DNA of 64,000 nt from Pelomyxa schiedti (lineage: Eukaryota > Protista > Evosea): the NCBI GenBank assembly GCA_020536535.1, contig JAHLWZ010000150.1:1-64000 (forward strand). Direction: 5' to 3'. Shown here piece by piece: positions 296-57,200 of the stretch. The notes under the pieces were generated by a model. It was not told the DNA's origin, did no database searches, and saw only the letters and a list, made by a program, of their open reading frames with translations. How positions within the stretch are numbered: position 1 is the first letter of the stretch; every line of letters starts with the position of its first letter. Position numbers and translations under genes: made by a program.

Positions 296-617
296 ATGAC
301 CGACAACGACGACGTAGCTACGCCGCCCACCTCCAAGAGACCGCGGAAGCGTATAGCGGGACCGCGCTCGCAGACGCGGTCGTCGTCTTCGTCCTCGGAC
401 TCGGACTCGGACTCTTCGTCATCGTCACACCCTTACCTCTCGTCAAAACATAAACTGGCATCTTTGAAAAAAGCAAACAAGGAGTTGGCCAGAGAAAACA
501 AGGAGTTGGCCAGAGAGAACAAGGAGTTGCTGAAAAAGAACCTGGCACTGGCTAGTGAGAAAGAAGAGCTAAAAAGTTTAAATAAAACCCTTGCGACATC
601 TCTCGACGAATTGAACA
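296..617 (+). CDS. 5' part (Ser-rich plus coiled coil) of the REase-kinase gene that continues at 24646
   Basis: ATG at 296, MTDNDD...NKELARENKELARENKELLKK...LDELN; its 3' 121 bp equals 24646-24766. Confidence 0.75.
476..529 (+). repeat. 21-nt tandem repeat encoding the heptad NKELARE
   Basis: aacaaggagttggccagagaR twice plus a partial third copy. Confidence 0.9.
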
Positions 618-717
618 NNNNNNNNNNNNNNNNNNNNNNNNNNNNNNNNNNNNNNNNNNNNNNNNNNNNNNNNNNNNNNNNNNNNNNNNNNNNNNNNNNN
701 NNNNNNNNNNNNNNNNN
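618..717. other. Scaffold gap (100 N)
   Basis: Run of N. Confidence 1.
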
Positions 718-3700
718 TTCCATCTCGGGGTGATTCTTGAGCGATTCCGAGCAGTCGAGGAACGTTGTGCAACACGATGCCTCTGATGGGCCGTAATGAT
801 TGTGGAACGTGATGTCTTTTCCAAGGCAATCAAACACCTTGTGGACCAGTTCCCAGTGGAGTGACTCGCCTGCGGATATGATGGTCCGCAGTGACTTGAT
901 AGGTCTGGGGGAAGCACTTCCGCCTTGCAGTGCAACAGTTGAAATGAACTCACGAAGCATCGTTGGAACCAGAAGCAAGACAGTGACTCTGTTGTCCCTC
1001 ACCAACTGTAGGAGCTGCTCCGGATCTTGGTGAGCACCAGGAGGAGCAATCACAACACAGGAACCGGAAGCGAGAGATGCAAACACCTCGAGGGCACACC
1101 CGTCGAAGAAGAACGGTGTCTTGTGGAGGATCCTGTCTTCGGTTGTGAGTTTGTATTCGTCCCTGAGCCACATCACAAAGTTTGCCACACCGAGGTGGTG
1201 ATTCACTGCTGCCTTCGGTTTCCCTGTCGATCCAGACGTGAAGATCGCATAAACTTCTTCTGATCCTGTCTCGATGTTGTGTGGTGGGTTCGTTGTTGGG
1301 AACGATTTCCACAAGTCACCATCCTCCAAAATCGAGATCACTTGGAACGGCTGTTCAGGTGGGAGCTGTGATCTGAGTGACTTGTGTGACAGGATGACAA
1401 AGGAAACAGGTGAGATGTCTTCGAGGATCGCGGAGATTCTGTCGGGGGGTGATTCCGGGTCGATGGGAACATATGCTGCTCCCGCCTTGAGAACACCGTA
1501 AAGTGCAACGAATTGCTCGATTGACCTCTCTGCGATGATTGGGATGAACTTGCCTGGCCCAACAGCCTCGGGGTGTGTCGATTTGAGGAAGTGTGCAAGT
1601 TGGTTGGTCCTGTTGTTAAGTTCGTCATAACGCACTGTAACATTCCCCAACTGCAAAGCGGGAAAACTGGCGTGCTTTGATACGGACTCCTCGAACATGA
1701 AGTGAACTGCCTTTCTTGTTGCTTCCTCGGAGGTTTTGAAGTACTTCTCGGTGGAGTTCCAGGTAGCAAAGCGTTTTATGTCGGCATCATTGATAACCTT
1801 CAGCTGCGAGATGGGCTTGTTGGGAGTAGAAAGAACACTTCTAATTAGAGTGTCCATGTTGTTCGCCAGGCGGACTACCGTGGACTCATCAAGGATGTCC
1901 TTGGCGAACTCAAACTGGAGTTCCAGAGACCCATCTGGTTGTGGCACGGCATTGAGGGTGAGGTCGACTTTGGACATGGCAGGAGGGATGTTATAAAGAG
2001 GCTTCAGGTCCCTGATTCCCTCCATTGTGAAATTCTTCTTGTCTAAAAACTTCCAGTCATCCATCACAAACAGGACCTGAACCAGTGTGTGCATGCTCAT
2101 CCTGGTTTCGATATGGGTAGCATCCACAATCCAGTCAAGTGGTACGTCCTGTGCCTCCTGTACTGACAAAATCTTGCCTTTGACATAGTCCAGGGTTTCT
2201 TTGAAGGATTTCGATTCCTCGATGATAGTTCTGATGGGAAGCGTGTTGACGAAGAACCCAAAGAGGGATCCCACACCAGTGTAATGCCTGTTAGCTGTTG
2301 GAATCCCCACAACCATGTCACCAGTGGTGGTGTGGACTTGGTCTTGGAACCACCTTGGGCTGTGAAGGTGCAAAAGGAGGTTGAACACTGTAAGAACAGT
2401 CATGAACGGTGTTGATGTGCTTATGGTTCTGCCGAGTGATGACAAGGCTGAGAACAGTGATGGTGGGATGATGTGGATGTGGAATCCAGCTGAGTAAGTA
2501 CGGTTGTCAGTCCTTGGTCTGTCTAGGGGCAATTCGCACACTGAGTTGACACCCTCAAGCTCCTTTTTCCAGAATGACATCTGTTTCTCCTTCAGGTCGT
2601 TGGAAGGACCGAGGAGCACTTCCCTCTGCCAAATCGCAAAGTCGGCATATTGAAACGGAAGTGGTGACAGGGGGGCTGTTTCCATTTGTGCCGTGTTTGG
2701 TTTGGATTCTGCAAGGACTTGGTTGTAATTACATGACAATTCTTTGAGAAACAGAACCATTGACCACCCGTCAGTGATGATGTGATGTGCTATTATGAAG
2801 AGGACTGTTTCTTCCTCTGTGAGTCGGAAAAGGGTCAACCTCACAAGTGGACCTCTTTGAAGGTCAAATGGAATGTTCACCTCCTTCCGGAATTGCTCCG
2901 AAAGCCACTTCGCTTTTTCTTCGGCAGTGGGAATGCCCTTGTAGAGCTCCTCCGAGAATTTGATGGCAGAACCTGGATCATCAGGAGGAAGAACCAACTG
3001 GTAGCTCTCGGCCGATCCATCGTCAGTCATGAACCTTGTTCTGATGCTTTCGTGTCTCACGGCGATCGAATTAGCTGCTTTCTGCACTGCAGAGCAGTTC
3101 AGAGGCCCGATCAAGTGGATCCCTCCAAAAACGCTGTATTGAACGGAGTTGGGCTGAAGTTGGTCCAAGAAGAACAGCCTGTGCTGTGACAATGACAGCG
3201 GTGCCTTCCTCTTGCCCAATACCTTCGTGGATGCTGTAATTGGAGGATACCTCGCCTTTGTTGATGTTACTGATGAAGAAGAGGTGCTGGCAGCAACGAG
3301 AGCTGCCACGGACCGGATTGTCCTGGAGCTGAACAGCTCCACTATGCTCAAGTTCCACCCAAGGTTGTTCGCTGCAGTCAGCATCTTGAGTGCTGCAATA
3401 GAGTCACCACCCGCTTCAAAGAAGTCCTCGTCGATTGAAGATGGCGGTGCTGGCAGTGCTTCACACCACAGCTCGTGAACCTTCTTCTCCACCAGTGTAA
3501 GTGTTGAGGTGTCGAGCTTGGGTGTTGGTGTTACTGTTGTTGATATTGGAAGTGCTGTGGGTTCCTTTGGAGGATCATGAGCAGTCACACAGTTGATGAA
3601 TGTGGATTTCTTTTTAAAAAGGGCCCCACAGAGGTTGTGAGTCAATATTCCAATTCCAGGTGGTCCAAAGTCGAAGATCTCCACTGAGTCACATCCTCCA

Positions 3701-5203
3701 TTGCACGAAATGCCTGCCCTAGGGTATTTTTCAGTCACAGTTAGAGATTATTTTTTTTACTTGACAGTTTCAGGCCAGTCTATTTTGTTTTCAATTGAGT
3801 CCCTTTGGAGACGAATCACGAACGAGGCTGCATCCAGCTGGATATTGTGAGAATTAAAATAGTGGAGTTGGGAACTTATACCTGGGAGGAATCGGTGTTG
3901 GTGCTTGAGCTGATGGTTGTGCAACCGTCACTCAGAGGTGCAGCAAAGGCATACCTCTCTTTGGGATAACTTGAGATAAATTTGTTCTGCACCTCTGTTT
4001 GATAGAATGATGTATGGTAAGCTTCCTTGACAGGCAATAATTTAAATTGCTGTGGGGCCAACGTCCGAAGTTTTTCGAGAGAGTCAGGGTGCCCTACAGT
4101 GAAGCTGAGTGGGAACTTCCTTTACAGAGAAGAAAGTATGCGCACCACATACAACCGTCTGGTTTGGCGCAAGGATGATGGATGCAAAGAGCGGAGTTTC
4201 CGGGAATTCGGCATTGACTTCAGTGAGTCTCTTTTCCACAACGTTCAGTGGTCCTTTCACAAGGGACATCCACGACTTTCCCATGAGTTCTTTCCCCCAC
4301 TGCTTGTTGTGGCTCTCAAGGGTAAAAAGACAATTGCTGGCACCCACCATCATCAGGTCCACACAAAATGTACCCATTTTATCCATCGAGTCTGGAAACG
4401 AGTCAGTACAAACAAAACAAACAATCTTGAGTGTCAACAAACAAACCTGATTTTGAGATTGCAGAGGCAGGGGAGACCCCGGCCGAGTAACCCAGCGCCA
4501 CGTCGAACGACCGCGCGAACCGGCGCAGCCTCTCGTCCCCATTTGGGTCGCTGTCCTCTGCGGCAGCATCCCATAATGATGCCGCCTCTGCGCCCCCGCC
4601 GTGAGGTCGCTGTAGTGCCGCTCCTCCTGCGGGCGCGGTGGGGTCTCGTCGTTGGGTTGCCGGATCCAACGCGGCGGCGACGAAGCAAGCACATGAGTAC
4701 AGGTAGATCAGCGGCACTAGAATTACGGGAGCGCCCAGCACCGCGTTGGGGGGCCGCGTGCTACGGTCCACAATCCTGTTTCATCGTTTCGGTTAGACTC
4801 CGGTTTCCGGGAAGGGACCAAAGGAGAGAGTGAACAACACTCACCAGGAATACACGTTGTAGTAATCCACCGAAGCACCGTTCACGTGAGAGAATACTGC
4901 AGCAGTAACGTCGAGGGCGGCACACTGGCGGTCGATGAGGCCTCCCTCTCTGGCCTTGGTCGAGAATGACACGCAGACACCGCGAACCCAACCGTCAACG
5001 AGCACCTTCCACTTGGGCCGCGTGGGGCAAGGCAAAGCCTCAGCGGAGGTGGAGGTGAGCGGGGAAGAGCCGATGTTGAGATTATGGCCGCACCATAAGG
5101 CGACCTTGTCGAAGAGCCAAGTAGAGATGTCGGGGTCTTCGTTGAACCCCGCACAAACTGCAATGCGCCTCGGTCTGGCTGATAGCCGGGAGTTGGTGGC
5201 CAT
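718..5203 (-). CDS. Hybrid acyltransferase-carrier-condensation-adenylation (AT-T-C-A) NRPS-like synthetase, truncated at the gap
   Basis: ATG 5203; five frame-preserving GT-AG introns (4761-4844, 4392-4446, 4094-4145, 3838-3881, 3719-3760). AT motifs GYSAG (4478-4492), NQTVVCGHP, AYHT (4011-4022), FDFGPPGIGILTH; carrier DFFEAGGDS (3400-3411); C domain HHIITDG (2767-2787) and FFVNTLPIR; A domain YAIFTSGSTGKPK, FFDG, NHYGPSE. Confidence 0.9.
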
Positions 5204-5366
5204 GTTGTGCACCGGGGTTTGTTTTTTCAGATAAAGTACCCTTTTTGGCCTCCGGGGGCGTGACCTCTGGTTTTTCAAGGGCTTGGGGACTAAGACTTTT
5301 GACCTAAATCACACCTGTTCAATGAACATTCACCAATCAGCTCTTTTTTGGCCAATTCAAACCTCC

Positions 5367-8300
5367 TTAAATGACGAAGCCAACCTTTCTGGTGATGGAA
5401 AAGGAAAAAGTTCTTAACTTAGAATATGTGTCGCGCCGCTTGGGATCTGGCATTTTCCGTACAATTTGGAACTGTGGAAGAGTTTTTAGATTGGAGTTGA
5501 AAGTTTGTACGTTGTTTACGAACGGGAGAAGGTTGGTGGGTGGTGGTGTGGGGGAGGCAGTGTGGGGCGGGGGGGTGCCCGCGTAGACATTATGGGAGGC
5601 AGCTGTGTTTGGTTCGATATCCTCTTTGGCGGGAGTGACCTGATTGATGTTGGGGTTGTGTTGTGGCCTGAGGACCCTGGTGAATGTATATGCTGTGATG
5701 GTGATGGTGATTGTAACTGTTGGTGGTGGTGTTGGTGCTGATGTCCAGGAGGTGTACAACACTCCACTCTGGGTGGCAGAACTAGCGGCGGAAGAAATGC
5801 ATGTGGGAGGTGGTGATGATTCTGATTCGCCGGTTGTGTGCTGTGATGAGTTTGAGAGGTTGTGTTGTAGGGAGTATTTTCACAGTTGCTATTTGTGTTT
5901 GTCCTGCCGGGGGAGTTTGTATGTACATTATTTGGAGTCTGTGATGTTAGGTTCAGGATGTCCGATGCATCGGGGAATGTACATATTGCACAAACTGAAG
6001 TGTGGCAAGTCCGGGCTGATGACATGGACCTGCCCATGTGCAGCAGCAATAATTTACACTCGGAGCAAACTTGGACTTTCCGGTCGTACAAGGGGGGTCT
6101 TCTGTTCGCGGAGATGAATAATGAGATGGGAATAGGAAATTGCTTGGATTCCTCACGTTAGCAAGAAGTTGCGTGCTCTTCTTTTTTTGCTAATAAGCAA
6201 TCTGATGTCTTCTTGGTACTGTGCCTGCTTGTTGTGGTTGCTGCGCATCCTGAACAAGGTTAAAAAAGACAACCTTGTTGGATAAAAGGAGATGGATACT
6301 TGTCCATTCGGCATTCTATTTGATACTGCACCAGACTCATTTTAGGGGATGAACTCTCCTAAAATGTTTGGCGATTTATCGAATGGAAAAACTCATCTTG
6401 GAACCTCGATACAGGGTTTCGTCTCAATGGTGTGGCATTGTCTTTTGCACCGTTCCACTTCACGCTGCTGTTGAATAATTTTAGATTCGTTCAGGCGTTC
6501 ACCGGGCAATGGCACTTTTACCTTTCTTTCTGTGTCAGCGACAATTAAAAGGGTGGTGGCTAATTACTTGTATTGGATCTTCATAGAGTGCGGTGCCCAT
6601 TTGTACCTTGTTGAAAGTTAGTTTGCACAAATAACCAACAAGAGGTTGGTGACACAGTGGGTTCGATGTCAGGGTGTTCCTCATTTGTTTCCTCCTCCTC
6701 ATTCCCCCAGCTGGCAATCAAATTAATTTAGTTGAAGTCTAGTGTAGAACCATAGTATGCTTACAAGCAAGGCTCGGAGCTAAAGTTTATTGCTGTCTCA
6801 ACCCATTCCTCTAAGTGACTATGTATCTTCAAGTTAGTTCTAAATAAAAACTTAAAAATGCTGCACTCAACTGTTCCCTCGCTTCTAACTCTGAATCTGG
6901 TGAAGCCGGCGGAGAAATTGGAAGTTCCTCAAGTTGCTGTGCAGGGGGACCCTCACCTGGGAGCGATTTTGATGGCGAATCCAATACAGGTTTTCCGGTA
7001 GAGATTTCTAGCCCTGGAGGTGAAAACCCATTTGTGGGGATTGTGGCCACAGGAGCTTGCCTTAATGCAGTCCCTTCTGGCGACACGTTACTATCAAGAG
7101 GTGTCTGTGTATAACATAGATTGGCTTCAACCTTTCCAATTGATGAGTAATTGGGGAAATATGAAAAACTACTCACTCCAACACCCAGTTTGAGGCGTAT
7201 GCTACCTCCTTGTGAATAGCACTCTTTGCATAAAGGCTCCAATTTGAGTTGATCCGTTTCAACAAGATTTCGAGGAGTTCCCAAAGTTTCTAAGTCCAAC
7301 TTTTCACCGCAGGTGGTGCAGGTGAAACAGGTACGATGCCATGCTCTGCCAAGAGCCTGAATTTTATCAAGTACAGTAACTAGGCCTCCGCACTTAGCAC
7401 AGCTGTGTGTCCGAGGAGTGAGAATGTGAGGAGTAGAGCAAGGTGATGCAAGTTTAGGACTGGTGCTTGTAGGAGATAGGGATGGGGAAGGGGGTGCAAT
7501 GTCTAAGTTCGGGGAACTGGGCTGGTTTGTTACAAGTTGCCGCACTCTGTGAACATGTTTCTCCCGCTCAGTTTTAGCCCAGGATTCTGCTTCTTCTTGC
7601 TGTTGGAAGAGTTGCTCTTCATCTTCAAAGTCTTGCCCAGCAAGGACAGGTTCCCTTGAGATCTTGGGAAAAAAGGGAACGCACAGGGGTATTTCATAAG
7701 GAGTACCTGTTGCAACGTAGCTCTTTTTGTGAAGTGTGAGCATGAAGAGACGAAGTGTATAAAGCTTAATTCCTTTGCTAAATCACACCCAGACAATACA
7801 AAGGCGTTTTCAACATCTTTTACATTCTGAAGGGTTTTTAGTTATAAGGAACTCCAGAATAATATCTACCAAGCAACAGTAAGAACTTATGCGCTGGATC
7901 GCCAAGGAAGTCTGTACTGGTGATAGAATTCCATCCCCATCAGAATCCCTGAATGAGTAAGATGTCAAACCAACAGTTACATAAAGAGTAGTAGGCACTA
8001 CAGGCTTATGAAGACATCCTTGATAAAGTTGAATTGTTGTGCATCAAAGCAGAGCCTTGACGTGGCTATGCATTGAAGTGTACAAGTAATTTCCGCTTCT
8101 GTAGTGAAGGGAATAAGTTTATTCAGTGACCCATGAGTTAGAGCTGCAAAACAAAACATGAACCCAATGAAGTCTAGATACTGAGGAAACTGTGAGACAA
8201 ATTAAGGAACAGGTGACATACACCATATCCAAGCATTTTCGATAAGGTTGATAATTTGCTTTGTAAATTGGTATCAAGGCGGGGAATCACTTTCGCCACT

Positions 8301-9416: not shown

Positions 9417-9741
9417 TCTCAACAAACTTCCAGTTCCGAGAACTTGATGTACTAGCAGAGTGATCAGGAGCAGATTCGAAATTGCGTTCAAAGCGACGAA
9501 GGTGCGGGGCAGATCTACGCAGTAATGAGGAAACGAGGCGGAGGGCGAAATAGCAAGCACTTGGACGACCAGATACGGGCCGCTATGTTTCTAAATGTTC
9601 ACTTTTGTTAAAACAAAACCAACTGGAAAAAATCCTCATATTGCTTTTGCTGTGCAGTTTGCTTTCCTTCTACCTCTGGTTTTTGGTGTATTGTTTGTAT
9701 TTTGAAGTTACGTAAAAAAAAAATGACGGCTGGAATTCCAG

Positions 9742-12700
9742 GCGGATGACGAAGAGGACATTCGGCCTCAACCAACTTGGAAGGCACGGCGCGGGCGACG
9801 ACCTGCAGTGGCACAACCACCTTCTGCGGCTACAAACAAGAATCTTTCAGGAGTCAAATCGAAACCAACAGATGCACCCAATTCGCGCAGTTCGCCCGAT
9901 TCCAGAATCCCGCCGACAGATGCCATCCACAGTCCTGAGGCTATTCAGATGAAACTATTTCTTCTCAATAAGGACTTGGCTAAACTGAACGGGAGGAAGT
10001 CCTCTCCCACGTCACCACAGCAACTGCTGGAGACAGCTCAGCAGCGTCATTCGTTGCAACAAGAAAAACGACAAATGCAAAGGACACTGAAACAAAATGG
10101 TGGGAAGAACACAGCCGCCCCTCAACCTGTTGGCAACTGTACTGCCCATTGTGCCCCAACCCCTCTTTCACAAAATCGCCCCCAAAGGGGTGTCAGGGAA
10201 CCAGAAGAGATTCATGCCCAAACCAATCTCGGAGCCACTTCACGACAGCCCCAACATCAAAGTCGCGGCAAGGTAGGCAGACCTGTTCGGAACTTGCCTC
10301 CACAAAAAGTAGCATCTGAGACAGAAGAAGATTCGGAGGCGGAGGAGGAAGAGGAAGTGGAAGATGAAGAGACCGAGGAAGATGAAGAAGTAGAGGATAA
10401 TGAAACAGAAGAAGAAGAGGAGGAGGAAGAAGAAGAAAGTAATGAAGATGAGGATGAAGACGAGGATGAGGAGGCATCGGAAGAGAGTGAGGATGAGGAG
10501 GAAAAAGAGGCTGGGGAAGACGATGAAGATGAAGAAAAAGCTGAGGATGAAGATGAAGATGAGGAAGAGGAGGCCAACTCTAATGAAGAAGGAGAGGAAG
10601 ACAATGACCAAGAAGATTCTGAGAAGACTGGAGTAAATCCGGCTGTAATAAAACGTCAGCAAGAACTTCGAATGCAGAAAGCACGTGCAAAGGCAGCAAA
10701 GGAACCAAGATGGAAGCACCCAGCCTTCATGCAATTAAGAGATATTGTGCCACAATCCGTTGTAGGGAAAAAATTTCACCCAATTTATCACGTCAGCAAT
10801 GGTACCTGAGATTACCAAAATTACACCTCTAAGAAACAACAGGAAAGCGATATGTGGAACCCTATTGGAGCATTTCTGTTTGGTATACACCTTCCCCTCA
10901 ACCTGCTGAAACGTTGATGACTTTTTTGATGAAGCACGGGCCGCAATATGCAAGCAAACTAGAAGAGATGGTACCCAAACACCTTTGACAACCACTTCAT
11001 TAACAAGTTGTTAAGGCGTTCTGTTTGAAGAACGGGCTTGTCACAGTTCAAGGGAAAACAGCTGTTAATCCAGAACTTATCGTAAAACAAAATCAGCAAA
11101 TTTCATGCTTGTAAGACACCACCACGCTGATTTCAAAAAGTAAACTACAACAGCTATCACATGCATGAACCGCCAACAACTGATCAACTACCTCACATAA
11201 TTGGGGAAACAAAGGAGTTGCTTGCAATTTACAAACCGGCATCTCTTATTGTACGCTCCAGAAACCTCTTTTATATTACCAGTTCTAAACCTGCCTTCAC
11301 AGATGCACCCAATTGGCGCATGGCACTTCAACACATTTCTTGGAATTACCAACAATGTTTTGGGATACCCAAAAGCCACTCGTGTGTAACCTTAAAGGGA
11401 AAAAACCTGTGTACTTAGGTGTGTGCAGTACTTCACAGGTTGGATCGAGTTACGTCAGGAGTTTGTATAGTTGCCAAGGATCGTGACAGTTCCGCAATTA
11501 CAAAACATCTGCGCCTGATAGCCGACCATAAGTTTCGCAAGTACTACCTTGCTCGGTGCAAAGGCCACTTCCTCTGGTATACCACTGTCCATTACCACAA
11601 CCCAATGTCACTAAGAGACAAAACCCAGGCACAGCCTTAAAGTGAATAAGCCTTTGGTTATGCTCTCTGACTCAAAGGGAGCTGTTTCCCTCAAGGGGGG
11701 CAAGCCCGCAGTAACTAAGTTCAAGCGTCTAAAATATTGTCCCCACAGCGATACTACACTGCTAAAGTGCAGTCTTGAAACAGGGCGCACACATCAGATT
11801 AGGATTCATTTGTCATACCTTGGTTAATAATCCACCATTTCCTTGTAACTTAACCATGTGCAGGATTTCCCATTGCGAATGACACCACATATGGAGGAAC
11901 TAGTAATTTTCTATATGAAGCTCACAGCAAAGGTGACATCGAGGACATTGATGATTATTTTTTGGAAGGTACCCTGCAAGGAAAAACCGCCGCAAAGGAA
12001 ACAGTGCGTCGTGCCAGAACGGCATTTGAAGAGTGGCAAAGGAAATATCCAATTCAAGAAACCTCAAATGAAACCAGTGGTGAACCCATCCCTCGTCCAA
12101 ATGCAGAAGCGACGGAACCAACATCGTCAGGTCCTGTAGTTGCAGAGACCTTGTCAACAAAAGCACAACCAGCAACCAACACATCAATTAACACCAGCGA
12201 AACAACTCCAGCTTGCGCAACAGCAGTAACACCCGGAAATCACCCACCAGCCGAAAAACTATCAGCCGCCAACAAATCAATTAACCCCAGTGAAACAACC
12301 CCAGCCTCCTCCACACCAGAAACAAGATCACCCGGGAATCTCCCATCTCAACAACAACAACAACCCAATGCAACTCCTGCCACTGCAGCTGCAGCAACAA
12401 CAACAACAGCGGCAAAAACAGCCGGATCACCTCACACACTGCCCTCTGGGCCAGAGAATCACAACACCCGAGAGAAAAACCGCACAAAGAAACGGCGCCG
12501 TTTCAAGAAAGGCATAGATGGAGACCCACAGGGGGATTCACCGAATTCCAGCGTGCACGTGGCCAGGTTCAACTTCCTGCACGCGGACATTGACAAGCCG
12601 TCTGTGTGCTGTGGCCACGGCCTTGCAAGGCCATGGGAAGACGGGGACGACAACAACCACACATCGCAGGACCAGTATATATTCCTGCTTGCATTCAAGT

Positions 12701-24545: not shown

Positions 24546-24645
24546 NNNNNNNNNNNNNNNNNNNNNNNNNNNNNNNNNNNNNNNNNNNNNNNNNNNNNNN
24601 NNNNNNNNNNNNNNNNNNNNNNNNNNNNNNNNNNNNNNNNNNNNN
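24546..24645. other. Scaffold gap (100 N); true length 375 bp if filled by 122-496
   Basis: Flanks match the two ends of 1-617. Confidence 0.9.
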
Positions 24646-26650: not shown

Positions 26651-28075
26651 TCAGTGACCATTTGTGTCCCTTAGCAAAGAGTCGAGTTCTGCTTGGACTT
26701 GGGGGTTGGTGATGAAGGAGTTGCCTAGATACAGGCACTGTGACTGAGGCATGAAGGTGTCACAAGTAGTGATGGCTGAGTCTTCTGATGTAATCAGCTC
26801 CACTGTGCACCCGTGGACGAGTGCCATTGGACAACCTGCCAATTATCGTCACTATCAGAAAGGCGATTGTTGTACCTACGCTCATCCGCTTCACCCATAA
26901 CTATTTGTGCCATAGAACTGAGGTTGTCAGCGAGGGCCTGATTTGTGATGCGGAGAGGCCTACCAAATAGATCGTTGCACTCGAGTTTGTTTACAATTGA
27001 TCTATATGAAAATAAAAGGGAAAACGGAAAAAAGTTTAGTCAGTGGCATACTTGATTCCACACACAGCTACGGCGAGGCCAGACGTACCTTTTCTAAGAG
27101 GCTGAACTGTGCTATCTGTCATTATAACTCCAACATGCACTCCCCACCTCCGATAGATTTCTGGTAAAGACCATCTTAAGCTTCAAAACAGAGAAAAGGG
27201 CAAGAAAATACCTCTCCAAAGTTTAAGGACAGTTAAATCCGTATTCCTTGGAAATCTAATGAAGTTTCCTTCACCAGAATTGCTCCGGTCAATACCAGAG
27301 TTAGGTAAAATGAGTCCCTTTCTCATGGTGGTGATTACATGTGGGGCATCTAGCTTAATCTTAATATGGAATGTTGGTTAATTGGTTACATGCATCCGAC
27401 AATAGAGTCTGCATCATCCAAAATCGCCTGAATAAATTCAGGAGGCAGCATAGTCCTGCAAGATAAGTATTAGTTAGTTAAGGAGGGANNNNNNNNNNNN
27501 NNNNNNNNNNNNNNNNNNNNNNNNNNNNNNNNNNNNNNNNNNNNNNNNNNNNNNNNNNNNNNNNNNNNNNNNNNNNNNNNNNNNNNNNGGAATGTTGGTT
27601 AATTGGTTACATGCATCCGACAATAGAGTCTGCATCATCCAAAATCGCCTGAATAAATTCAGGAGGCAGCATAGTCCTGCAAGATAAGTATTAGTTAGTT
27701 AAGGAGGGACGGGGAAAGAGGCACTTTGTAGCCAGTGGTGCAGCCAGTGGTGAAGTCACTTTGATTGAAGCAAGCGAGAACCTCTCCCCCTCAATGAGGC
27801 CACATACTTTGCTTGACACCACAATCACGTCTCCTTCCTTTGTTTCCACGAACCTACAACTTTAAAAAACCCACACGTAACAAACAAACAAACAAACAAA
27901 CAAAAAAACCATTCAAAAAAAAGGGAAAAAAATGCCCCCCAAACGAAACAAACAAACCAACCTGAGGAGCGGCAACAGACCCAGAATCAATAGCGCGTTG
28001 TAGTACCTCCAGCAGATCGTCGCCCTCGTGTAACACACGCCACGCCTTAACTCCGCTGCAACACACCCGCGACAT
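26651..28075 (-). CDS. cofE: CofE-family (F420-0:gamma-glutamyl ligase / FolC2-like) gamma-glutamyl ligase, spliced
   Basis: Exons give GDDLLEVL, EGDVIVVSSKVCGLIEG, PNSGIDRSN, VGVIMTDS..QPLRKGTSGLA, DLFGRPL..T.QALADNL, MGEADE, PMALVHG. Confidence 0.85.
27368..27709. other. False gap: a 121-bp overlap duplicated either side of 100 N (27489-27588)
   Basis: 27368-27488 is identical to 27589-27709. Confidence 0.95.
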
Positions 28076-28329: not shown

Positions 28330-29553
28330 TCAGTGGAGAATTCTGAACCTACCACTAATAGGGTAGTGGTCCGAGAGTTCCATTGCGGTTTTGGAGCCAC
28401 CCTTGCGTGATGGAAGGCTGAAGCTTGTGTTGTCCTGAACGGCAACTTCCAGGGGCAAAATGTTTCGGACAAAGAAGTAGTCTAGCCTGTAGCTTTCGGT
28501 GCCGTGTGAGAAGAACTGCTTCAGGGAGTTCCTGCTGTCACTGGTCAGGAAGAGTTGGTTTGTTGTTGTCACTGCTACAGTAGAGGTTGAGGGCGGAATT
28601 TCCGGCTTTATTGCAGTTGTAGTTGTGGTAGTTGCCTCACTATTTTCTGCAATGCTGGAACTTGTTTCCACTGTCGTGGTACTTGATGTGACTTCCGCAC
28701 CGGTTGTTCCTCCAGTTTCTGCTGAAGGTGTACTGTGCGCCATTGGTACAGCACTTGGCGGAGAGAAGGTAAGTGGGTGAAGCATTCGAAATGCATCACG
28801 AAGACCCTTCGAGGCTAGCTGCTCACACATAATGGAGTACTGCCCAGTATAAGCGGTGTAGTCAAGGTTGAGTTCAGCAATGTTCATATCACCCATCAGA
28901 ATCACCGGCTCGTTCCCGTCCGGAATCACAGACAGAACTTTCCGCATGTTCTCCTCCCTGCAGTCCAGAATCTCCCTAGCATTTGGGTTCGAGTAGCAGT
29001 CTGAGCCAACAACAGCAAATCCGGCCTGCAAATGTGTGACAATGATTCTGACACCGTCAACAACGACGCTAGAAACGCCTTTGCAAGCAAAAGCGTCCCA
29101 GCCCGCCAGCTTCTCGAATTTCACAAACGTGCATTTGTCGAATGCCTTGGGCTTCTTGCACAAAAGCAGGATCCCGCCTCCCATAAGCGGCGAAAACGCG
29201 CTCCCGCGGAAGGCCAGCATCGAGTTGTACAGCCGCGCGACCGATCGCGCGATCGAGTCGGCCAGCGACGTGCTCCAGACCTCGCACAGGGCAACGAAAT
29301 CGGCCCCCGACGACATAATTAGTCGCGAGATCGCGGCGGCGCGGTCGGCGTCGTAGTAGGCGAGATTCCGCGCGAACGTGGCCGCGAAGGTCCCCGCGAA
29401 GAGGTGCGTGTTCAGAAACAGGAACCTCCGTATTTCGACGTCGTTGTCGTCGCCGCTGCCGCTGTCATTTCCAGGTTTTTTAGGACTGAGGAGGCTCTCG
29501 TTGGCGCAACTTGACGCTCCGAAGGATGAGCCTCCTGAAGGAGAGGCCGCCAT
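28330..29553 (-). CDS. Exonuclease-endonuclease-phosphatase (EEP) family enzyme, sphingomyelinase/phospholipase C-like, intronless
   Basis: FLNTHL, DFVALCEVW, GGILLL, DAFACKGV, THLQAG, MGDMN, RLDYFF, LSDHYPI in one ORF; first in-frame ATG at 29553. Confidence 0.85.
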   Translation of the reverse strand: MAASPSGGSSFGASSCANESLLSPKKPGNDSGSGDDNDVEIRRFLFLNTHLFAGTFAATFARNLAYYDADRAAAISRLIMSSGADFVALCEVWSTSLADSIARSVARLYNSMLAFRGSAFSPLMGGGILLLCKKPKAFDKCTFVKFEKLAGWDAFACKGVSSVVVDGVRIIVTHLQAGFAVVGSDCYSNPNAREILDCREENMRKVLSVIPDGNEPVILMGDMNIAELNLDYTAYTGQYSIMCEQLASKGLRDAFRMLHPLTFSPPSAVPMAHSTPSAETGGTTGAEVTSSTTTVETSSSIAENSEATTTTTTAIKPEIPPSTSTVAVTTTNQLFLTSDSRNSLKQFFSHGTESYRLDYFFVRNILPLEVAVQDNTSFSLPSRKGGSKTAMELSDHYPISGRFRILH

Positions 29554-29719
29554 TTGTTCGGTGAAGTTTTGATTTTCGTTCGAACGGAAGTTTGTGATTG
29601 TTTTATGCAAAAAATGTTCAGGTCTAGACCGAGGGGCCAAGGGGAAGTCAAATGTACAATTGGGGACTTTATTTATCTTGCAAGTGGTGTATTGGGGTGA
29701 GGTATTGAGGGAGGGCCGG

Positions 29720-30379
29720 TTACTCTTGATACTCAAATACTAGTTTATACAGGTCTGGTTCCAGGTGAGCCAGTTGCACATGGCAGTTTCGTGCATGCCA
29801 TGATGCATTCAACCCATCAATAAAGCTGTTGAGATTGGATAGTGTTGACCCGTATGAGACATGCCCGACACTGGCTCCGGTTCCGCCACCAAGAGCTCCT
29901 CCAGCAACTGTATAATATTATATTAGGGAAAAAGGAAAACCAAGACACAAAACACAGGGTGTTAAATGGTACGTAGATGTCTGTGATCTTCTTATATTGG
30001 GTGTTTTTTGTTTTTTTGTATTGCTTTGAAGCATACGTAAAATTCCAGCAGAAAAAGGAATCCCCATTCCAAGGGTAGCTATACCCACTACCGCAGCCAC
30101 TGGAGCTGCCACCAGAGTGCCCACGAGAGTGCCGTACTTTGCTCCCTGTTTTAGTACATTAACTAACGAGCCATGTAACTGCGGCTTTTTATAATACATT
30201 ACCGTTGATTTGGGGTGGCACTCGTGCACAATGTGGTTTACTTTGCTGATGATGTCATTGTACTCAGCTGGCAAAACCAAAAGGCGCAGCAACTGCGGCG
30301 GCATCGAGTTGTCAAACAGTTGCCCTGTCGTTCGACTAACCACTATTGTCTTGGTGACGACTAGTCCGGGTTGCAGCAT
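29720..30379 (-). CDS. Small membrane protein with a Gly-rich hairpin, weakly Erf4/GOLGA7-like
   Basis: FDNSMPPQL...EYNDIISKVN, hydrophobic GxxxG segment, one intron, then LNSFIDGLNASWHARNC...YQE stop. Confidence 0.45.
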
Positions 30380-54239: not shown

Positions 54240-57200
54240 TCAAACTAGTGGAGAGGTATAAGTAAAACGTAGGCAGTGTGTAATAAGGTGGGGAGCATAC
54301 CACATTTTTATATCAGTGCTTGTGTTGCTGCTTGGTTTGCTCCAATAGAGTTTGAACAACTCCAGGGGAGAATTCCGCACACAACGAAGAATACATGTCA
54401 CAACAATAATGTTCAGATACAAACGTCTGTTGAACCTCCATCACTTTTGTTTTTACTTGGACCTATTTCTTCAGGGTGAGAGAGCTAAAATCGGGAGAAG
54501 CATGTTTACATTGTGTTCTTGTCCTCCCTCATACCACCACATGAGAATAATCTCTTCAAATCGTAGTAGAATCTGCATTCCTATTAATATCGAGTGCACT
54601 TGAAGTCAAAAATCTACCGCTGTGTACACATTCCCTGGAGCAGAGGCAATCCACATGTTGTCACTTGTTGGATTCTCAATTTCATAGCTCACACCGCCAA
54701 GCAAGACTTGTTGTGTAACGCCAGGATCACACTTATGTACCCGAGCTATGGAATTTAAATCGCCACTGCTTGGTTTCCATGAACCGGGATTGGTTAGGAT
54801 GGCTTGTGGTGGGCTGGTTGAAAGCACGGCATAGTATATTTGGGGAGGTGATGCTGAATCAGGTGAGAGAATTGTTACATGCATCTTCTAGGTGTGAAGT
54901 TAGTTTTTTTCTTAGTCATTATTTGGGATGTGTACATCGAGCCAAGATCTCCATTTTGAGAAATGGTTAATAACTGCCAGTCTCCAATCACTAGTAGTGT
55001 AAGACTGATTAGGAAAAGGTTTTTCACACACAAATCGGGATTTGAAGCACATAATGGTTGCAAGTGGGGAACAAATCTGGAAAATGGTGACAAATAAGGA
55101 CAAAAGGAAGAAAAACGAACTTTGAATATTGAGAGCACTTTTGTGAGGTGTTGTACCAGTGTTTGCAAGTCATTGCGCAGACATTGACTTCTTTCACTGA
55201 GAGATATCTTCGAAGGTTTTGTCAGGATGATTTGGGGGAATGGAAGGCAACTTGAAAACTATCCTTAAAATATTTACAGGTAAACATTGTACATGCTGAG
55301 AATTTTCATTTGAAGTATTACCCCCAGCAGCTGCAAGTAAGTGGCTGGTTGTGGAAAAAGGAGGTGTGTGATTTGTTGCAACCTAAAGCTTTAGTTCAAA
55401 AAAAGGAGGGCTTTCCAACAAGCAATTTTTTTTTTAGAAATGAGTAGGGATTAACCTTGAAGGGTGTGGCATAGGGATACCACATGCTGGGTTGTTTTGG
55501 GTCCAGTCCAACGTGAAGTAAACTGCTCACAGCAGAGTCAAAACCATGGGCCGCTAGATGCAATAGTGAATATTTTGCTCCAGGAGTGTTGAGATCCACT
55601 CCCGGAATCGAAATTGTATGTGCAAACAACTGTGGACAAAACATTAACAGATGCAATAAAGTCCATCCACTTGTGGTGGCAGCACTCAAAGTACCACGAA
55701 GGTGATTGGCATATGCGGCGGCAGCAGAAGCCGCAGCAGCCTGACCTGCCTCAGCTGCCGCTTTCACAGAAAGGTCATACTTGCTGATAGCAGCTATGAA
55801 GTCCCGTACAAGCACAAAGTCCCCAGTGGCCATGGCCCAATAAAGGGCATTTCTTCCAGCCCGGTCTCTCATCGCCACATCAATGCCATTGCATGACAAC
55901 ATGAAGCGCACGACTTCACTGTTTTTGTTTTTGACTGCCATAATCAAGGGTGTCTCCCCGTCATACGAGCAACTGGCATTGATGTTTGCACCAAGGGAAA
56001 TTATATCCCTTGCCACTGTGGCTGATTTAGCATAATGCAGTGGTGTTTTCCCCCACTGGTCCAGCCGTGTTGCGTCACAACGTGTGCGTGCGGCACTGTT
56101 TACAATCATATCCAGAACATCTGTCATATTATTTTCAACCAGGGAAAAAAGCAAGTCCGTGATATTGGATCCAAGGGAGATCAACTTGGGGATAATGTTA
56201 AAATGTTTACTGTGCATTGCAATTAATGCGGCCGCTTCCAAGAAAATTGGATGAAGTACTTCCGGGTGCTCAAGGAGTAAATCCACAATGTGGTAGGAAG
56301 AGGGAGAATTTAGTCGCCAGACGGCAAGTTGTAATGCGGTTTCGGCATCCTCAGCCAAAGTATTAGGCCTCACAGTTGGTGCTGAAAGCAAAATTTTGAC
56401 GGCATTTTCGTCATAATTTCGCACTGCATGATGGAGAGGGGTAAAGTTATGGCACAATAAATTTGGGTCAAGCCGATCACACTGGAGCAGAACCTGCATG
56501 GTGGAGTAGTTGTGCCATTTAACTGCAATATGCAAAATGGACTCCCCCACAGTGGAGAGGATATTTGGGTCAATTGACGGTGTCTCAAGTCCGACTTTAA
56601 TAAACTCGGTAGCAAGAGGATCATTTAGCGATGCTAAAGCGTGGAAGATGGTAAACCCAAGAGAACTTTGCACAGTAACCGAAGCTGGGTAACGTTGACA
56701 TAGGATCTGGAAGTGCGGAAGGGATCTAGCGTATATGTATGTATAATGTGCAACACAGCGACCTCTTGTGTCGCGGTTGCAGAGTACTTGTTTTGCTCCA
56801 TGTGATATAAGTGCATCAAGGCACTCTACATTCCCGGCCTGTGGAGCGAATTAACATAGAATCACACACAAAGACTGCTCACAAGGATGGCTAGATGACC
56901 AACATTCAAAAAGGAGTGATTTTGAACAGGAGGTATATCCTGCGTAGAATCTCTGTTACAATAAAAATAGAAGAAAAGGTACTAACAGAAGTAGCCGATC
57001 GGTCCAAGAGTAGTTTAAGCATCTCTAAGTTACCCGTGAGGCAAGCAAGGTGAATGGGTGTGTTCCCCTTGTCATCTGGATCCAATACTGATTGAGGGGT
57101 TGCCTTGACGCTTGCAACGGGAATATTCCCCGTGAAAGCTGCAGAAAATAACTGTGGTAGGTTTAGATTGATAACCACACACTGTATTTTGACTTTTAGT

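Follow-up and report, generated by a model that had tools for sequence, protein, structure and literature searches.

A spliced and transcribed non-ribosomal peptide synthetase gene of the amoeba Pelomyxa schiedti with a predicted N-terminal acyltransferase fused to carrier, condensation and adenylation domains

We analyzed a 64,000-nucleotide stretch of the genome of the anaerobic, free-living amoeba Pelomyxa schiedti (GCA_020536535.1, contig JAHLWZ010000150.1, positions 1 to 64,000; hereafter the window) and found on its minus strand a gene for a non-ribosomal peptide synthetase (NRPS), in which a putative acyltransferase (AT) region precedes a carrier (T), a condensation (C) and a partial adenylation (A) domain. 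By translating 3600-5260 in three frames and joining six exons, we obtained a single stop-free frame of 4224 nt (1408 aa) that runs from an ATG at 5203 into the N gap at 618-717, with five introns removed (69, 55, 52, 44 and 42 nt), all of which are bounded by GT..AG on the minus strand (Table 1). A preliminary description, made from the letters alone, had proposed these five introns and quoted a set of motifs, all of which are present in the spliced protein: LGAPVILVPLI, GYSAG (with Ser217), SIILAPNQTVVCGHP, LPVKEAYHT (with His338), IDWPET and FDFGPPGIGILTH, as well as the GGDS of the carrier (Ser514) and the HHxxxDG of the C domain (HHIITDG, aa 719-725). Its further statement that the open reading frame (ORF) track misses the AT domain holds for a naive ORF list, which alone misses the AT exons, but not for GenBank. 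A search with exon 6 recovered a protein that is identical to our model letter for letter (P0001, 100% identity; titled 'non-ribosomal peptide synthetase, partial [Pelomyxa schiedti]'), so that the N-terminal exons are already part of the public annotation.

The P. schiedti genome was sequenced from single-cell amplified DNA with Nanopore and Illumina reads, together with Smart-seq2 transcriptomes (PMC8887013). Two DNA runs contain 93-99% of the sampled words of the window, a 23-kb contig of DNA run X2 spans 1594-5400, and two single-cell RNA-seq runs from the same study contain parts of the stretch. The RNA contigs remove introns 2, 4 and 5 exactly as modeled, whereas introns 1 and 3 lie outside their coverage, such that the splicing envisaged in the preliminary description is confirmed for the former three. 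A single RNA contig joins exon 6 to exons 5 and 4, i.e., the AT exons to the exon coding for T-C-A. Further, the final AT motif, EIFDFGPPGIGILTH, and the T-C-A domains lie within one uninterrupted ORF (433..3738); therefore, the fusion depends on no splice and the parts are not separately transcribed, which disposes of an objection raised in advance, namely that the N-terminal region might have its own transcript. Thus, the AT region is fused to T-C-A in a real gene, which is spliced and transcribed. We also weighed the alternative that the locus comes from contaminating bacteria or fungi, or that the assembly wrongly joined an AT gene to an NRPS gene, given that the source cultures were polyxenic and the DNA whole-genome amplified (PMC8887013), and that the T-C-A part has its closest relatives outside Pelomyxa among bacterial NRPSs (cyanobacteria, Acidobacteriota and myxobacteria) at ~30-35% identity. 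This is hardly credible in the face of five spliceosomal introns, three of them seen spliced in RNA, the same architecture and intron positions at independent loci (see below), and the representation of the stretch in two DNA runs and the X2 contig; we reject it on account of the introns, the RNA joints and the exon shared by the end of the AT and T-C-A.

The matches of exon 6 to the PP-binding, Condensation and AMP-binding families are far beyond chance. The C domain aligns with PF00668 over profile positions 4-451 of 456 (E 2e-70; 2.3e-70 with exon 6 alone), and the A domain with PF00501 over aa 1083-1394 and profile positions 1-330 of 384, after which comes the N gap. Hence, the AT-T-C-A order first described, with a GGDS carrier, an HHxxxDG C domain and an A domain, is recovered by Pfam on the spliced protein, with the A domain being partial. 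In comparisons with solved structures, the C domain reaches 194-202 bits with Txo1/Txo2 and 188 bits with an A-T-C protein, 110-120 bits with the elongation C domains of PCP-C, TycC and LgrA, and 70-72 and 47 bits, respectively, with the starter C domains of surfactin and CDA. By this ranking of scores, rather than by a tree, it looks like an elongation-type C domain that would expect a carrier-bound donor, which fits an acyl thioester on the preceding T domain (acyl-S-T) as the donor. We accordingly rejected lipoinitiation by a starter C (Cs) domain, as a T domain precedes the C domain and the latter scores higher to elongation than to starter C domains. Pfam places no AMP-binding match in aa 1-480, i.e., the first T domain is not preceded there by the adenylate-forming domain that defines a FAAL/AL-ACP loading unit. 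The specificity residues of the A domain, which we read by eye and did not rely on, are approximately D-G-L-T-I-A-H-C-C, versus D-A-F-T-M-G-A-C-S in the paralog P0121 (see below). Within the A domain, the word depth of DNA run X2 reaches 300-1160x at 1076-1135 and 1272-1342, as against a background of ~44x, and loose ends occur at 1342 in DNA as well as RNA; the high-depth stretches are probably conserved A-domain cores common to paralogs or to the bacterial NRPSs of the polyxenic culture.

Beyond the A domain, a 1824-nt DNA contig of run X1 runs 1406 nt past position 718, and the gap is therefore closable. On its far side, at 296-617 of the plus strand, there is a coiled-coil ORF with no NRPS sequence; the 3′ part of the NRPS gene is therefore missing from the assembly. 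This ORF combines a Ser/Asp-rich stretch with a coiled coil of repeated NKELARENKELARENKELLKKN and enters the same N gap from the opposite side, such that either two genes end within the gap or the scaffold was joined there arbitrarily.

We posit that the first ~465 residues constitute a very divergent AT of the kind seen in fungal and actinobacterial type-I fatty acid synthases (FAS) and in the SAT domains of non-reducing polyketide synthases (NR-PKS), an assignment supported by profile, feature and structure searches. Taken singly, the five small exons have no Pfam match because the pieces are too short. On the joined protein, however, the SAT family (PF16073) emerges at aa 212-338 (4014-4501) with 29.1-32.5 bits (cut-off 22.8), and likewise in three paralogs, P0002 (28.1 bits), P0121 (36.2 bits) and P0122 (37.5 bits). 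NCBIfam returns a weak match to the malonyl-transacylase mdcH (E 2e-4). In searches of PDB sequences that are non-significant alone, the top three chains were PksA (SAT), a fungal FAS beta subunit and a polyketide synthase (PKS) AT. The PksA alignment sets the SAT active-site GFCMG over GYSAG, and that with FAS beta comprises three collinear segments, the W..P...P.PL(I), VVSGPP (VVSG.P) and DFGPGG regions. An ESM feature search gave a score of 0.94, with 190 of 256 features shared; the neighbors listed are all SAT, FAS_AT (FAS_AT_central), Acyl_transf_1 or VinK-type AT proteins, and the highest-ranking cluster consists of 375-aa stand-alone SAT proteins from Ascomycota. The alignment by eye to the AT/SAT of the fungal FAS beta chain in the preliminary description had picked the family to which these searches point, which is better termed fungal/actinobacterial type-I FAS-type than fungal.

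At the sequence level, this AT appears to be an orphan lineage, with no detectable relatives outside Pelomyxa. An exhaustive phmmer search with aa 1-480 against 1.84 billion representatives (E<=0.001) gave no match outside Pelomyxa and matched five proteins, all from P. schiedti; word-indexed searches with the AT region and with a profile of the paralogs found Pelomyxa proteins only, even at E<=10. The P. schiedti genome has at least five related loci, one of them coding for a stand-alone AT, and a search for further AT-T-C-A proteins, as suggested earlier, found the same architecture at independent loci. P0121 (KAH3764772) is an AT-T-C-A-T-C... protein cut by the contig end, with a full A domain, AMP-binding_C, a T domain and a second C motif, HHLIIDG; an N gap truncates it at the N-terminus, and RLRVALCSGLSED can be read upstream. 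P0002, P0003 and P0125 are AT-T-C or T-C(-A start) fragments, while P0122 and P0123 (KAH3760956) are also fragments, with the latter being a partial copy on the same contig as P0124. P0124 (KAH3760971, 436 aa) is a stand-alone AT that ends in stop codons, with no downstream T-C-A and no biosynthetic neighbors at its locus, and is a possible trans-acting acyltransferase. The RRIAVCAGFNEDPD motif of exon 1 is kept in P0002, in P0124 and upstream of P0121. The AT regions of P0001, P0121 and P0124 have their five introns at the same positions and in the same phases; the family has therefore diversified after intron gain, inside the eukaryotic lineage.

At the P0121 locus (JAHLWZ010000259.1, 6690-16507), the gene lies head-to-head with a gene for an MFS_1 transporter, with an Aminotran_3 gene further upstream, and an N gap (9701-9800) hides its true start; these surroundings may be a small biosynthetic neighborhood. 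The tails of P0002 and P0003 (..KKREKQ.TSCSRSPSQSMEISQP) resemble an out-of-frame A-domain start (cf. the alternative minus-strand frame at 1338-1769 of the window), and P0125, from the same 90% cluster as P0003, stays in frame where these two shift. Comparison of the copies points to a frameshift or assembly error in P0002 and P0003.

For structural comparisons, AlphaFold2 (AF2) was run with five-sequence alignments, and the models are of low confidence because no relatives outside Pelomyxa were found to deepen the alignment; the searches used the model of the stand-alone paralog P0124. Foldseek on the PDB returned among its top ~34 matches only FAS-beta AT, NR-PKS SAT (CTB1, CazM and PksA), Mycobacterium tuberculosis FAS-I, FabD and PKS ATs, with the best being 7q5s_B (E 4.9e-4). 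The top 30 matches among Swiss-Prot AlphaFold models comprise nothing but FAS-beta subunits and NR-PKS N-termini, with the alignments lying in the AT/SAT region. VIA-align Z scores are 11.3 for FAS AT, 10.1 for the PksA SAT, 9.7 for the CTB1 SAT, 8.1-8.3 for the CazM SAT and 6-7 for generic malonyl transferases (MATs), and a SAT cluster ranks first in an ESM Atlas shape search. Within the low-confidence model, the strand-elbow-helix around GYSAG and a first strand at RRIAIAAGF would fit the AT core. The AF2 models do not prove an AT fold, yet the searches with the P0124 model all agree on the FAS-AT/SAT type.

The predicted catalytic residues are those expected of a Ser/His dyad. Ser217 of GYSAG, which is placed by the alignments with the paralogs and PksA, is the likely acyl-accepting nucleophile, and His338, which aligns with the AT His motif of a PKS AT, its likely partner. 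The nucleophile elbow reads GYSAG in four members of the family and GYCGG in P0121, with the Gly-Tyr and second Gly being invariant, while every paralog long enough to include the His of EA(Y/F)H has kept it (EAYHT/EAFH), and the VV(C/S/G)GHP and DFGPxG motifs are conserved among the paralogs. Such alternation between Ser and Cys is typical of SAT domains, which use either residue as the nucleophile. Malonyl-specific ATs have an Arg that binds the carboxylate; counted from the nucleophile without gaps, the corresponding position of P0001 is not an Arg, which suggests that the acyl substrate is non-carboxylated, with any chain length being admissible. The extreme divergence of the domain, which had no homolog outside Pelomyxa at E<=0.001 among the 1.84 billion representatives searched, and the replacement of the His of GHSxG by Tyr would also be compatible with an AT that is catalytically dead, or a structural or docking remnant, in a protein whose first T domain is primed in trans. 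We consider this unlikely, as the Ser/Cys nucleophile, the His, VVxGHP and DFGPxG are kept across paralogs that share only ~45-50% identity, including the stand-alone AT, which has no other domain to serve.

Based on these observations, we propose that the gene codes for the initiation module of a nuclear, intron-bearing P. schiedti NRPS that primes itself via its N-terminal AT, a reading to which we assign a probability of about two in three (0.68) and which is the most economical. The AT, being of the type-I-FAS acetyltransferase/SAT kind, would take an acyl group from acyl-CoA or from a partner carrier protein onto Ser217, with His338 as the general base, and hand it on to the neighboring T domain, at the phosphopantetheine arm of Ser514. 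The C domain (HHIITDG) would then join the acyl-S-T donor to an alpha-amino acid that the A domain has activated and that sits on a T domain beyond the assembly gap, to yield an N-acyl-aminoacyl thioester, which later modules may extend or release, by analogy with P0121. Since P0121 continues with a T and a second C domain, at least one family member would make products that go beyond one N-acyl amino acid. Within the same architecture, the AT could instead load acetyl or another short acyl group from CoA, in which case the product would be an N-acetyl or short-acyl capped peptide and not a lipopeptide. The best structural matches, i.e., the acetyl-transferring AT of fungal FAS beta, speak for this variant, and the absence of the Arg of malonyl-specific ATs is consistent with it, as it is with a non-carboxylated acyl group of any length. 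However, SATs specific for hexanoyl or other acyl groups and the FAS-beta subunits of secondary metabolism score about equally (HexB, aflB, PksA and CazM), and chain length cannot be read from these comparisons; hence, we regard short-acyl loading as possible but doubtful.

Several observations weigh against a self-priming NRPS. The data establish how the gene is built, that it is transcribed with three introns spliced out, and its domain order, catalytic motifs and paralog family; what the AT does, which acyl group and amino acid are used and what is made are predictions. The Pfam SAT match in P0001 is partial (profile 106-239 only), and the phmmer and profile searches of PDB sequences reach E values of just 0.6-1.8. 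The mean pLDDT of the AF2 models is 42.8 for P0001:1-480 and 49.5 for P0124:15-415 (60-88 in the first ~230 residues of the latter), and neither the C-terminal half of the AT nor the small ferredoxin-like subdomain that an AT fold has beside its alpha/beta-hydrolase-like core is confidently modeled. The gene is 3′-truncated, such that the acceptor T domain and the release domain lie outside the visible sequence, and a survey of the window located no phosphopantetheinyl transferase (PPTase), acyl-supplying enzyme or cluster partners. The last stretch of P0002 and P0003, where the A domain begins, is out of frame, and parts of the paralog family may be decaying or misassembled. Nor did we find a biosynthetic gene cluster in the 64-kb window: its large ORFs code for LIM, Exo_endo_phos or ankyrin-repeat proteins or are without assignment, and no PKS or CoA-ligase neighbors of the NRPS gene were seen. 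The truncation, the frameshifted tails of P0002 and P0003 and the lack of biosynthetic neighbors in the window would also fit a gene acquired from bacteria long ago that has lost its function and is decaying, transcribed but making no product. This is improbable, given that the frame is free of stops for 1408 aa over six exons, the RNA is correctly spliced and all catalytic motifs are intact. Moreover, the truncation is due to an N gap and not to a mutation, with a DNA contig running on past it, and the frameshifts of the paralogs could be errors of an assembly from amplified single-cell DNA and Nanopore reads (PMC8887013).

Table 1. Coordinates of the NRPS gene, its exons, introns, domains and predicted catalytic residues, and of other features (positions in the window unless another contig is named).
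Feature	Position	Strand	Remarks
Whole visible gene	718..5203	-	6 exons, 5 introns, 1408 aa; 3′ end cut by assembly gap
Exon 1	4845..5203	-	aa 1-119 plus 2 nt; start ATG; first strand/oxyanion-loop region RRIAVCAGFNEDPD
Intron 1	4776..4844	-	69 nt, GT..AG, phase 2; outside RNA contig coverage
Exon 2	4447..4775	-	aa 120-229; LGAPVILVPLI, low-complexity insert, nucleophile elbow GYSAG; RNA contig spans 4447-4774
Intron 2	4392..4446	-	55 nt, GT..AG, phase 1; RNA joint 4391>4447
Exon 3	4146..4391	-	aa 230-311; C-terminal end is SIILAPNQTVVCG
Intron 3	4094..4145	-	52 nt, GT..AG, phase 1; outside RNA contig coverage
Exon 4	3882..4093	-	aa 312-382; HPDSL... and LPVKEAYHT; RNA contig
Intron 4	3838..3881	-	44 nt, GT..AG, phase 0; RNA joint 3837>3882
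Exon 5	3761..3837	-	aa 383-407; IDWPETV; RNA contig
Intron 5	3719..3760	-	42 nt, GT..AG, phase 2; RNA joint 3717>3760, cut +1
Exon 6	718..3718	-	aa 408-1408; AT end (EIFDFGPPGIGILTH), linker, T, C and partial A in one open frame
Putative acyltransferase region, FAS-AT/SAT type	3547..5203	-	aa 1-~465, introns included
Ser217 codon, predicted acyl-accepting nucleophile (G-Y-S-A-G)	4484..4486	-	alignment with paralogs and PksA
His338 codon, predicted catalytic His of Ser/His dyad	4014..4016	-	aligned to AT His motif of a PKS AT
Carrier (T/PP-binding) domain	3295..3483	-	aa 487-549; PF00550, E 1.3e-12 to 2.5e-12
Ser514 (GGDS) phosphopantetheine codon	3400-3402	-	motif FFEAGGDS
Condensation domain	1780..3207	-	aa 579-1054; PF00668; HHIITDG at 2767-2787
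Adenylation domain	718..1695	-	aa 1083-1408; PF00501, E 6e-59 (6.3e-59 with exon 6 alone); cut by gap
Assembly gap	618..717	.	100 N; hides remainder of A domain and anything downstream
Large ORFs with LIM, Exo_endo_phos and ankyrin-repeat domains	6829-7743, 28330-29736, 55396-56673	-	none biosynthetic
Further N gaps	24546-24645, 27489-27588		in the window
P0124, stand-alone AT	GCA_020536535.1 JAHLWZ010000573.1, 10001-11589		five intron positions as in P0001

Known ways to acylate the first residue of non-ribosomal peptides involve starter C domains, FAAL-ACP pairs or separate acyltransferases. Lipoinitiation by a starter C domain (surfactin and CDA) or FAAL-ACP has the same predicted outcome as the Pelomyxa module, an N-acylated first amino acid; however, the Pelomyxa C domain scores far lower to starter C domains and its first T domain has no adenylating domain upstream. 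The closest described analogue is the EasC/EasA pair of emericellamide biosynthesis, along with the scopularide and W493-B systems, in which the acyltransferase EasC moves a CoA-activated polyketide onto the first T domain of EasA, whose next C domain joins the acyl chain to the first amino acid (PMC4515620, PMC3901194). While EasC is a stand-alone enzyme, the Pelomyxa AT is fused in cis to T-C-A and has in P0124 an additional free paralog. We liken the two by role; EasC is outside the top 30 Swiss-Prot structure matches. Further, EasC systems are fungal, whereas the Pelomyxa gene is found in an anaerobic amoeba, in a window with neither PKS nor CoA-ligase neighbors.

The SAT domains of NR-PKSs (PksA, CTB1 and CazM; PF16073) share with the Pelomyxa AT the position at the N-terminus of a megasynthase, a Ser/Cys nucleophile with a His, and Z scores of 8-10. 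They select a starter acyl group and pass it to a carrier, and a like role is predicted for the Pelomyxa AT, but they precede KS-MAT-PT-ACP instead of T-C-A, and the identity is only ~10-15%. The AT of FAS beta, from fungal and actinobacterial type-I systems, is the best structural match (Z 10-11; Foldseek E 1e-4 to 5e-4), from which the Pelomyxa AT differs in lying outside a FAS, without ER, DH and MPT domains, and in having GYSAG instead of GHSxG. The AT-ACP loading didomains of modular PKSs resemble the predicted scheme in that the AT charges the carrier next to it, and PpsE-like KS-AT-ACP-C proteins have, like the Pelomyxa protein, a C domain after the carrier; however, the ATs of both are Acyl_transf_1 (PF00698) domains lying behind or before a KS domain, whereas the Pelomyxa protein has no KS domain and an AT that appears to be of the FAS-AT/SAT type. 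PpsE-like proteins are also the nearest multi-domain analogue in an ESM neighbor search with aa 1-1060, which found no cluster joining SAT and Condensation. The searchable literature, in the limited libraries available to us, yielded no description of an AT-T-C-A, SAT-T-C or similar order in NRPSs and no discussion of NRPSs in Archamoebae, including Mastigamoeba, with nothing pertinent among the top matches for NRPSs and PKSs in that group. The Pelomyxa genome paper makes no mention of NRPSs or of PKSs/polyketides (PMC8887013). Within these limits, the novelty lies not in the parts, which are known, but in a domain order without a published description, an orphan AT lineage and an uncommon host.

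Whether the reading extends to the whole family is, in our estimate, an even bet: Pelomyxa would then have a lineage-restricted family of NRPSs that are self-primed by a cis-fused AT of the FAS-AT/SAT type and make N-acyl peptides, which would constitute a further route of acyl initiation beside starter C domains, FAAL-ACP pairs and trans-acting ATs. If true, the cis AT-T-C-A arrangement would be a compact, self-priming alternative to these and a new part for lipopeptide engineering. As the AT is too divergent for ordinary sequence searches, it could also serve well for testing how the history of the FAS-AT/SAT fold may be traced. In an anaerobic, free-living amoeba, NRPS genes have thus been retained, are expressed and have grown into a family, which points to unknown secondary metabolites in its bacteria-rich, anoxic niche.

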